A DNA stretch of 64,000 bases, from NCBI GenBank assembly GCA_964035545.1, contig OZ037772.1:4530233-4594232 (forward strand), written 5' to 3'. The notes below the pieces were generated by a model. The model made no database searches. It was not told the DNA's origin and was given only the letters and a program-made list of their open reading frames with translations. The translations under genes were made by a program, and so were the position numbers. Shown in pieces: positions 47,701-50,700 of this stretch. This DNA is from Bugula neritina (taxonomy: Eukaryota; Animalia; Bryozoa). Position 1 is the first letter of the stretch. Each line of letters opens with the position of its first letter.

Positions 47701-50700
47701 TCAACACTATACATATCAACACTATACATATCAACACTACACATATCAACACTACACATATCAACACTATACATATCAACACTATACATGTCAACACTAT
47801 ACATATCAACACTATACATATCAACACTATACATATCAACACTATACATATCAACATTATACATATCAACACTATACATATTAACACTATATATATTTAC
47901 ACTATACATATCAACACTATACATATCAACACTATACATATCAACACTATACATATCAACACTATACATATCAACATTATACATATCAACATTATACATA
48001 TCAACACTATACATATCAACACTATACATATCAACATTATACATGTCAACACTATACATATCAACACTATACATATCAACACTATACATATTAACACTAT
48101 ATATATTTACACTATACATATCAACACTATACATATCAACACTATACATATCAACACTATACATATCAACACTATACATATCGACACTATACATATCGAC
48201 ACTATACATATCGACACTATACATATCAACACTATACATATCAACACTATACATATCAACACTATACATATCAACACTATACATATCAACACTATACATA
48301 TCAACACTATACACATCAACACTATACATATCAACACTATACATATCAACATTATACATATCAACAGTTATTGCTTACATTTATTTTTACCTCTCACTGC
48401 AGAACTCGCGAGATTGTGGAGAGAACCGTCTCTGCGCTAAAGAGAGCTGCGTGCAAGCGTGTGCAGATGACTCATCTTGTCCAGCAGGTCTGCTCTGCTC
48501 AGAAGGTGTCTGCAGTAACCAGTGTGCAGAAGACTCAGCGTGTGCAGAAGGGTTTGTCTGCAGAGAAGAAGGTTGTGTTGGCAGCTGTACTCAGTCATCT
48601 AGTGTGTGTGCTGGCAGTCAGGTGAGTTAGCTGTTCACAGGGGAGGTAATTGCTAGTTTTATAACATAGAGTTCACCATCTTGACATTGATATCTCAAGA
48701 GAGCACAATATACAGATACAGTACATACAAATATACATTGTGTGCTATATTTAGTTTAAGTTACTTAATGCTAAACTATTATCTGTATCTTTCTTTCAAC
48801 TGCAAAAGCAATACAAATTGTTATACAATGAGTCATTTTACCTAATTTAGTAGACACTATGTATCTCTAGATTTTAGCTGATTTAGTAGACACTATGTAT
48901 CTCTAGATTTTAGCTGATTTAGTAGACACTATGTATCTCTAGATTTTAGCTGATTTAGTAGACACTATGTATCTCTAGATTTTAGCTGATTTAGTAGACA
49001 CTATGTATCTCTAGATTTTAGCTGATTTTCGAAGTTTACCAGCTAATGTGTATAGTTTCTTGCATTAAACTGATAGAATATTAACAAATACAGCTGAATA
49101 TTGATGGTTTTTTTCTAACTTTGCTTGATTTTCTATGTTTTTCCTAATTTTTCAGTAAAGTAAGCAGAGTCTGTTTTTATCCATCTCCTTCTATTGGTAG
49201 AGGTATACATCTAAGTTAGTCTTTATACACTTCTTGTGTTAGTAGGGGTGTACAGAGCTAGATTTCATCCACTCCTTGTATTAATAGGGGTGTAAAGAGC
49301 TATTATTAGTGATGCTGGTATACAGAGCAGTAGAATATTTACTAATCGTATGTTTACCATAGATTTGCTCTGCCCTTGGTCTCTGTCTATCAAGTGACAC
49401 GGAGGTGTGTACCAGTGATGCCGACTGCGACAGCGACTCTCACATCGACTACATGATTTGTGTGGGCGGAGTTTGTCAGGAGTCTCTGGTCGTCGGCAAA
49501 AACTGCACCAAATCCTCTCAGTGTGGTGAGTTCTACAGGGAGTTATCCTCTCAGTGTGGTGAGTTCTACAGGGAGTTATCCTCTCAGTGTGGTGAGTTCT
49601 ACAGGGAGTTATCCTCTCAGTGTGGTGAGTTCTACAGAAAGTTATCTTCTCAGTGTGGTGAGTTCTATATGAAGTTATCTTCTCAGTGTGGTGAGTTCTA
49701 CAGGAAGTTATCTTCTCAGTGTGGTGAGTTCTACAGGAAGTTATTCTCTCAATGTGGCGAGTTCTACAGGGAGTTATCTTCTCAGTGTGGTGAGTTCTAC
49801 AGAGAGTTATCTTTTCAGTGTGATGAGTTCTACAGGGAGTTATTTTCTCAGTGTGGTGAGTTCTATATGAAGTTATCTTCTCAGTGTGGTGAGTTCTACA
49901 GGGAGTTATCCTCTCAGTGTGGTGAGTTCTACAGGGAGTTATCCTCTCAGTGTGGTGAGTTCTACAGGGAGTTATCCTCTCAGTGTGGTGAGTTCTACAG
50001 GGAGTTATCCTCTCAGTGTGGTGAGTTCTACAGGGAGTTATCCTCTCAGTGTGGTGAGTTCTACAGGGAGTTATCCTCTCAGTGTGGTGAGTTCTATATG
50101 AAGTTATCTTCTCAGTGTGGTGAGTTCTACAGGGAGTTATCCTCTCAGTGTGGTGAGTTCTACAGGGAGTTATCCTCTCAGTGTGGTGAGTTCTACAGGG
50201 AGTTATCCTCTCAGTGTGGTGAGTTCTACAGGGAGTTATCCTCTCAGTGTGGTGAGTTCTATATGAAGTTATCTTCTCAGTGTGGTGAGCTCTACAGGGA
50301 GTTAACCTCTCAGTGTGATGAGTTCTACAGGAGATTTATCGTCTAAACATGTGTGATTCTGGTTATTCAGTATTCCAACAGCCTGAGTCATATTTTGTCA
50401 TGTCTATTTCAGTGAATATGTTCTAACATACAAGCGCTTTGTTTTTCATTATTATACTTTCTTGAAATCGTGGGGGGAAAGTAAATAAAGCACAGTTGAT
50501 TAATTAACAAAAGGCACATTTAGATATCATTGCTGCTACCTGAGCAGGGCAGAACCAAGGTAAGTGTGGATAGGTGAAGACATTTAAATGCCATTGGTTC
50601 AATTTATTTCGTTGAATTAATACATATTTATGTAAGCACTTCTAAGATGCTATACTTTGATTGTATTAGAAGTGAGAAACACAAGTTGTATCTGAATAGA

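Follow-up and report, generated by a model that had tools for sequence, protein, structure and literature searches.

What becomes of an exon when the splice donor at its end is caught up in a tandem repeat, and every copy of that donor leads back into the same reading frame? The question is raised by a stretch of 64,000 nucleotides of the bryozoan Bugula neritina (assembly GCA_964035545.1, contig OZ037772.1, positions 4,530,233 to 4,594,232 of the forward strand), which we call the window and in whose own coordinates all positions are given. Here a long gene for a cysteine-rich extracellular protein, on the plus strand, carries a 33-bp minisatellite across the border between its exon 32 and intron 32. 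An earlier reading of these letters, referred to below as the original prediction, had proposed that choice among the copied donors could produce a ladder of isoforms and thus an exon of tunable length. We describe the anatomy of the array, the class of arrays to which it belongs, its youth, the lack of any selection signal, and the use of one copied donor in a relative. Our analysis makes it rather probable that the array is a young, non-adaptive intronic minisatellite, anchored at a splice junction and belonging to intron 32, and its in-frame property is best read as coincidence and not as design.

The array and its gene

The gene is recognised by its Pfam matches, TSP_1 at 37492-37725 (43.9 bits against a cut-off of 21.6) and DUF7107 at 40263-40490 (26.1 bits against 24.6), both of which exceed the gathering score and place it with the TSP1-repeat or DUF7107-type cysteine-rich extracellular proteins. 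Its coding stretches are about 100-250 nt long. Exon 32, which is single-copy in the genome both as DNA and as peptide, resembles DUF7107 weakly (21.9 bits, E 2.2e-4, under the 24.6 cut-off).

Within the end of exon 32, if units are cut from 49513, begins a row of 25 head-to-tail units of 33 bp (49513-50337, plus strand), and each unit copies the border of exon 32 and intron 32 from 13 nt upstream of the splice site to 20 nt downstream; Tandem Repeats Finder (TRF) reports the array at 49512-50344 with period 33, 25.2 copies, 93% matches and a score of 1398. With a unit in the range of 10-100 bp, many copies and high identity, this is a minisatellite in the usual sense. The consensus unit is TCCTCTCAGTGTG on the exon side of the splice site followed by GTGAGTTCTACAGGGAGTTA on the intron side; it translates into an 11-aa peptide with one cysteine, is matched exactly by 13 of the 25 units, and has no second occurrence in the 216-Mb genome. 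The exon itself ends in ...AAATCCTCTCAGTGTG/GTGAGT at 49525/6 (the slash marks the splice site), and this donor recurs with the unit: there are 21 copies of GTGAGT and one of GTGAGC, hence 22 GT donors spaced 33 nt apart in the common phase 1, while the remaining units carry one GCGAGT and two dead ATGAGT. Since the 21 copies of GTG/GTGAGT are identical to the native site over positions -13 to +20, the alternative donors are credible as splice sites. The frame of exon 32 stays open from 49363 to 50343, where a TAA (50344-50346) closes it, and all 22 GT donors lie in phase upstream of this first in-frame stop. Because the period is 33 and the unit is stop-free, any later donor gives an in-frame messenger, beyond removal by nonsense-mediated decay (NMD). 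In all of this the original prediction proved accurate: it had described a 13+20 nt unit in 25 copies with about 22 in-phase donors, stop-free in the exon frame over up to about 250 aa as far as the read-through stop at 50346, with each added unit contributing an 11-aa peptide and one cysteine.

How surprising is such a frame? The repetition of 33 bp is far beyond chance, but its in-frame and stop-free state is not: the consensus unit is stop-free in three of its six frames, and a random 33-mer of the local composition is stop-free with a probability of 0.41-0.58. The minus strand across the array is also open (window 49268-50335, 356 codons), and long open reading frames (ORFs) across minisatellites are thus no evidence of coding.

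What the extra units would do to the protein can be read from the cysteines. Exon 32 contains a second cysteine-rich module (C-TKSSQ-C-G...) that is completed within exon 33, and the join 49525->51008 yields ...NCTKSSQCG/..., with the regular pattern C-x5-C-x5-C-x4-C (cysteine spacings 5-5-4). Every extra unit puts one additional cysteine inside this four-cysteine module. Since the first donor alone restores the module that is split between the two exons, we infer that this exon-proximal donor is the main one.

Exon 33, on the other side of the intron, is not unique. The segment 50748-51262 (plus strand), which runs from late intron 32 through exon 33 into intron 33, has at least 20 dispersed copies elsewhere on its own chromosome, which is why exon 33 shows multi-copy depth in the sequencing runs discussed below. 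These copies, which take in 260 nt of intron upstream of the exon, are 88-96% identical and all lie between 0.29 and 3.93 Mb; in the window the segment is followed by a 13-bp array up to about 51403. Most copies lack 50953-51141, and with this stretch the acceptor and the exon's opening 134 nt; at these loci (L013-L018) the segment lies in compact collinear mosaics of other pieces of the host gene. One such mosaic (L017) runs through window 23722-24206, 24430-25072, 39652-40053, 50732-50952^51142-51262 and 62321-63135. The mosaics resemble an amplified paralogue with heavy deletions, or else a captured gene fragment.

Transcripts and proteins

Two public runs contain this stretch. One of them, X2, is a DNA run with 0.81 of the window's words and no differences from the window, and is probably from the source individual. 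The other, X1, is an RNA-Seq run labelled 'symbiont metagenome' with 0.06 of the window's words; its contigs are 90-95% like the window and must therefore come from a diverged relative. The contig comparison covers 50000-52150, which takes in the last 10 units and leaves exon 32 and the first donors outside, and it works with contig depths only. A 1691-nt contig of X1 (depth 45) shows the joint 51706->52066 between exons 34 and 35, bordered by GT..AG and absent from X2, so X1 holds spliced RNA of the host gene's counterpart.

Two X1 contigs pass into exon 33 precisely at its acceptor, 51007/8. The longer of them (4345 nt, depth 27.3) has upstream letters that are not on the repeat, which is what the canonical exon 32-33 join would look like, exon 32 being outside the stretch compared. 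The shorter (91 nt, depth 7.57) has 28 letters, plus 2 shared ones, on a repeat unit, joined to the exon 33 acceptor with GT..AG at the borders. Its joint is placed at 50250/1->51007/8, in unit 23, although units with identical preceding letters fit equally well; it too is absent from X2. Could this contig be the canonical form after all? Upstream of the 13 shared nt the exon reads ...CTGCACCAAA and the repeat ...GGGAGTTA, the exon 33 side of the junction being GGTTCTC, and over the final 28 nt of exon 32 only 17 positions agree with the repeat, so it cannot. The 30 repeat letters on the contig end where a k=31 graph would break on entering the repeat. Neither of the two exon 33 junctions occurs as DNA in this genome in a search allowing up to 3 mismatches. 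Template switching by reverse transcriptase across the shared 14 nt was considered as a source of the 91-nt contig and seems unlikely, given a depth of about one fifth of that of the spliced form and an uncovered unique intron.

In the diverged relative, then, one contig joins a repeat donor to 51008, and a second spliced contig reaches this acceptor from sequence unlike the repeat. On the evidence of a single short contig a copied donor is used in some of the relative's transcripts, about one fifth as often as the other form. The original prediction was to fall if only the 49525->51008 junction were observed, which is not what we find, since the X1 contig joins a repeat-copy donor to the exon 33 acceptor. 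How much of the array enters the messenger is a separate matter. Words internal to the array have a depth of about 7 in X1 as against 27-45 for the nearby spliced contigs, and the unique part of the intron at 50288-50719 has no X1 coverage. Were isoforms with many units frequent, the depth of the collapsed array words should far exceed that of the exons. It is several times lower instead, and many-unit inclusion is rare.

Searches for the protein gave little. The read-through ORF had no match among proteins of 174-553 aa in a word search, and HMMER against 1.84 billion representatives returned no protein with the 33-bp-unit repeat among the matches inspected. Those inspected from the 387 HMMER matches were unrelated 11-residue periodic repeats at 15-56% identity, which we rejected as homologues. 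The peptides of exons 32 and 33 gave no candidates in the protein collections searched, and in these collections the array does not appear as part of any translated or annotated protein, as a coding tandem repeat (an exonic variable number tandem repeat) would. This absence weighs little, because the organism's proteins seem not to be represented there. Neither the spliced junction nor the 33-bp unit turned up when JGI metagenome contigs were scanned for exact patterns.

Age and selection

The identical units, together with blocks of higher order, indicate recent multi-unit duplication. Units 12-18 and 19-23 follow a common pattern, a TCT variant followed by n consensus units and then the TATATGAAG variant, and the distal units 24-25 are degenerate; both features indicate turnover through slippage or unequal exchange. 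What follows the array (ATCGTCTAAACATGTGTG...) is similar to the start of a unit (ATCCTCTCAGTGTG...), either because a partial unit has decayed there or because the first duplication slipped on this microhomology.

Is the peptide, or the donor, under selection? Units 1-24 contain 11 variant sites, 10 of them transitions, with 5 synonymous and 6 non-synonymous; the synonymous share expected among transitions is 36%, and the observed ratio does not differ significantly from neutral, at the low power of 11 sites. The six positions of the donor core differ from the consensus in 4 of 150 cells, compared with 35 of 675 elsewhere. At this low power neither the unit peptide nor the donors look protected.

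Arrays across the window

The 33-bp array is one of many. Tandem arrays (56 TRF rows) cover 53-55% of the bases of the window as against about 3.5% in a sample from another chromosome (twenty 10-kb samples, 200 kb), so that relative to this 200-kb sample the host gene is exceptional. When we read the flanks of 33 arrays by eye, most started at a splice donor or within a few bases of one, and several ended at an acceptor. By a fixed rule (a GT with no fewer than 3 of the 4 RAGT positions that closes an open frame of 90 nt or more and lies within -40 to +12 nt of the array start), 15 of the 33 arrays begin near a donor-like site, compared with 17% of random positions.

Most of the window's arrays start after the donor and carry none. 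Four multiply the donor itself (Table 1), and it is with these four that the 33-bp array is compared here. All belong to the same gene, start at or just before a donor and repeat it, but the other three have periods (22, 29 and 25 bp) that are not divisible by 3, and use of their later donors would make targets of NMD. Thus the 33-bp array is the sole in-frame member. The chance that a given array has a period divisible by 3 and is also open is 1/3 x 0.4-0.6, or roughly 0.15-0.2, and one in-frame array among four is therefore unremarkable.

Table 1. Features around the 33-bp array and the four donor-multiplying arrays, in window coordinates; the exon side of unit n ends at 49525+33(n-1)
Feature	Position	Strand	Observation
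Exon 32	49395..49525	+	acceptor AG at 49393-4 (...tctatcaag/T); phase-1 donor GTG/GTGAGT; two Cys-rich modules
Native (first) donor GTGAGT, phase 1	49526..49531	+	read in the sequence and unit table
Units 2-24, 21 further GT donors	49546..50304	+	20 GTGAGT and 1 GTGAGC, phase as native; unit table
Unit 8 donor, weakened to GCGAGT	49757..49762	+	unit table
Unit 10 donor, destroyed (ATGAGT)	49823..49828	+	unit table
Unit 23 donor, last perfect GTGAGT	50252..50257	+	X1 RNA joint placed here; placement ambiguous
Unit 25 donor, destroyed (ATGAGT)	50318..50323	+	degenerate distal array edge; unit table
TAA closing the read-through frame	50344..50346	+	frame reading
Rest of intron 32	50338..51007	+	begins ATCGTCT..., compare unit start ATCCTCT; ends ...cattgcag
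Exon 33	51008..51246	+	two spliced X1 contigs begin at 51007/8; frame and Cys pattern continue from exon 32
Exon 34	51509..51706	+	joined to 52066 in RNA; GT..AG joint on the 1691-nt X1 contig
Donor-multiplying array, 22 bp	3474-20029		390 exact GTGAGT; in-frame stop 23 nt past the donor
Donor-multiplying array, 29 bp	31502-32417		45 GTACTC; in-frame stop 21 nt past the donor
Donor-multiplying array, 25 bp	35831-36177		14 GTTAGT; in-frame stop 2 nt past the donor
Donor-multiplying array, 33 bp	49512-50344		22 GT donors; in-frame stop 818 nt past the donor (the TAA)

Several of the neighbouring arrays are striking in themselves. The 22-bp array fills nearly all of a 16.5-kb intron with 752 copies of its unit, TGTGAGTTATTATATTATATAC; it begins at the donor and stops 6 nt short of the acceptor ttccag. 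Others begin 0-16 nt past a donor, for example at 24759, 37723, 40487, 46085, 51248, 52188 and 61867, while those at 42082-42325 (whose unit ends in TTATAG), 42627-43232 and 33164-33563 end at an acceptor or include it. The (TACTAC)n array at 52188-53262, about 1.07 kb long, starts 6 nt after the donor cctg/gtgag and reads in frame as poly-Tyr/Cys; it is thus anchored at a junction and has a period divisible by 3, with the donor itself lying outside the array. A short stretch of intron 34 at 51800-51943 reaches multi-copy depth in X1 and X2 alike (as much as about 4000, where the baseline in the DNA run is 84). Loose ends flank it on either side, and it is probably a small dispersed repeat. 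A literature search found no description of genome-wide minisatellites anchored at splice junctions.

Discussion

How could an array of this kind arise without any benefit to the gene? On the reading that we prefer, a minisatellite would have been seeded by chance 13 nt upstream of the exon 32 donor, when a 33-bp tandem duplication, possibly aided by the microhomology ATCCTCT / ATCGTCT at its two ends, took in the exon-intron border. Slippage or unequal exchange may then have expanded the duplication to 25 units, multiplying the GTGAGT donor as it went. The exon-proximal donor at 49525/6 would remain the main one, later donors would be used leakily, and minor isoforms with one or a few extra 11-aa units could survive, this noise being tolerated because it is in frame. 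The hundreds of frame-breaking decoy donors in other introns of the gene argue that splicing in this organism normally selects the exon-proximal site, a choice that contrasts with the intron-proximal preference of mammalian extracts (PMC3413131).

A number of points weigh against this account. No contig shows the canonical 49525->51008 junction itself, since the stretch compared did not reach back to exon 32, and the 4345-nt contig that we would take for it could derive from a paralogous copy of exon 33; the sole identified partner of the exon 33 acceptor is in fact a repeat unit. Moreover, X1 is 5-10% diverged and comes as contigs, and just one of these contigs, whose repeat side is under 30 letters long, represents the copied donor. 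The selection tests, with 11 variant sites subject to concerted evolution, have very little power. Finally, the intron-proximal rule (PMC3413131) would predict use of the last donor and not of the first.

The most attractive alternative is the one from which we started, namely that stochastic or regulated choice among the 22 phased donors adds 0 to about 23 one-cysteine units of 11 aa, with array length acting as a heritable tuning. The anatomy allows it, in that 22 strong donors share one phase and an open frame and their in-frame products escape NMD; one RNA contig of the relative does use a repeat-copy donor, and stochastic splicing within a tandem array has a precedent in the polyubiquitin gene UBC (PMC10809524). 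To this extent the original proposal of a donor ladder stands, whereas the many-isoform ladder and a function for it do not follow from our data. One in-frame array among four donor-multiplying arrays is the chance level, and the other three run into a stop; no conservation is seen at the level of codons or of donors; array words are rare in the X1 RNA run; each unit brings an unpaired cysteine into a disulfide module; and no database protein carries the repeat. Most of these points tell equally against an exon designed to be tunable, and we regard functional choice among the donors as unlikely. What if the exon has already been extended, so that the last intact donor, in unit 23 or 24, is the main one and about 240-250 aa are added? 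In vitro, the intron-proximal of two strong 5' splice sites does win (PMC3413131), and the X1 joint is placed, if ambiguously, at unit 23, which has the last perfect donor. However, about 22 units in most transcripts would make the array words many times deeper than the exons, which is the opposite of the observed ratio of about 7 to 27-45, and the 91-nt junction contig is a minority form (depth 7.6). The exon would also reach 857 nt in a gene whose coding stretches are far shorter, and every other donor array of the gene would be lethal on this view. We therefore consider such an extension very improbable.

Two further explanations set coding aside. The array, or its copy number, might be an artefact, a shorter repeat having been wrongly assembled; assembly across long identical repeats is difficult, and copy number is beyond the reach of contig-level data. 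Yet an independent DNA contig of X2 matches 50260-50803, the distal array edge with the adjoining intron, without a difference, array sequence is found again in the second run, from the relative, and the variant units and higher-order blocks are ordered rather than collapsed, so that we give this explanation almost no credence. Alternatively, the repeated U1-binding sites could be selected as a non-coding intronic element, with the donors as decoys, either recruiting U1 for the definition of exon 32 or acting in U1 telescripting, the suppression of premature polyadenylation in AT-rich introns. The window is AT-rich, and donor-containing arrays recur in the gene, including the one with 390 exact GTGAGT in a 16.5-kb intron. 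On the other hand, conservation in the donor core does not exceed that in the remaining positions of the unit, and most arrays of the window start after the donor and carry none; we hold the proposal to be improbable.

That the array is a working donor ladder in the full sense, with 22 phased donors yielding graded secreted proteins of 0 to about 23 extra one-cysteine units over a heritable and variable range, strikes us as a long shot. If true, it would be a visible case of a genome-wide process that grows repeats from splice sites and sometimes turns intron into exon. Taken alone, and as the junction-anchored minisatellite that we favour, the array is a neat and probably non-adaptive by-product whose value is that of a natural experiment. 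With 22 identical strong donors in 33-nt steps, one acceptor and products immune to NMD, junction counts would read out directly how the spliceosome chooses among equal 5' splice sites, be it by first-come choice, exon definition or proximity to the acceptor. The array also illustrates a one-step route by which an intronic repeat could turn into coding sequence. Beyond this, the host gene raises the larger question of why minisatellites in this genome start at splice junctions.

Comparison with known systems

Introns can be gained by tandem duplication of an AGGT-containing segment (PMC3265369, PMC4974935), and there as here the duplication copies a splice signal together with flanking exon sequence. 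In that model, however, the new intron arises between the duplicated signals inside an exon, whereas the 33-bp array involves the donor side only, in 25 copies, of a pre-existing intron: intron 32 keeps a unique 3' part and an acceptor of its own (50338-51007), which sets it apart from the Rogers model.

Competition between strong 5' splice sites (PMC3413131) and short-range tandem donors (PMC2423196) offer a further parallel, since in each case equal U1 sites compete for one 3' splice site, although those cases concern two sites a few to about 200 nt apart and the array presents 22 sites over 760 nt. Mammalian in vitro systems that are offered two strong 5' splice sites splice almost exclusively from the downstream, intron-proximal one (PMC3413131); judged by the low RNA depth of the array, this rule appears not to hold here.

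In UBC a tandem array of dual-specific splice sites gives rise to stochastic numbers of ubiquitin monomers, with no sign of regulation (PMC10809524). As in our array, the splice sites repeat with the unit and allow in-frame isoforms of variable unit number. But in UBC the AGGT motifs serve as 5' and as 3' sites alike, and each unit is an entire folded domain (PMC10809524), while here only the donor is repeated (CAGTGTG/GTGAGT), there is one distant common acceptor, and the 11-aa unit is mostly derived from intron. AGGT is absent from the 33-bp unit, which is therefore no dual-specific array of the polyubiquitin type; its pyrimidine-rich ...TCCTCTCAG follows a donor at a distance of only 29 nt (or 33k-4 nt), and a join at that point would shift the frame.

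The nearest relatives of the array are perhaps found in human genes within segmental duplications, where internal tandem repeats at exon-intron boundaries are kept or spliced out and the coding cases are often in frame (PMC2812944). There too a tandem repeat straddles the exon-intron border and gives alternative transcripts. The array described here differs in that one array offers 22 phased copies of a real donor, that its transcript support is one contig from a relative, and that it lies in an invertebrate-like gene whose introns are mostly minisatellites. Thus the 33-bp array is an unusually large case of this known kind of exon-intron-border tandem repeat.

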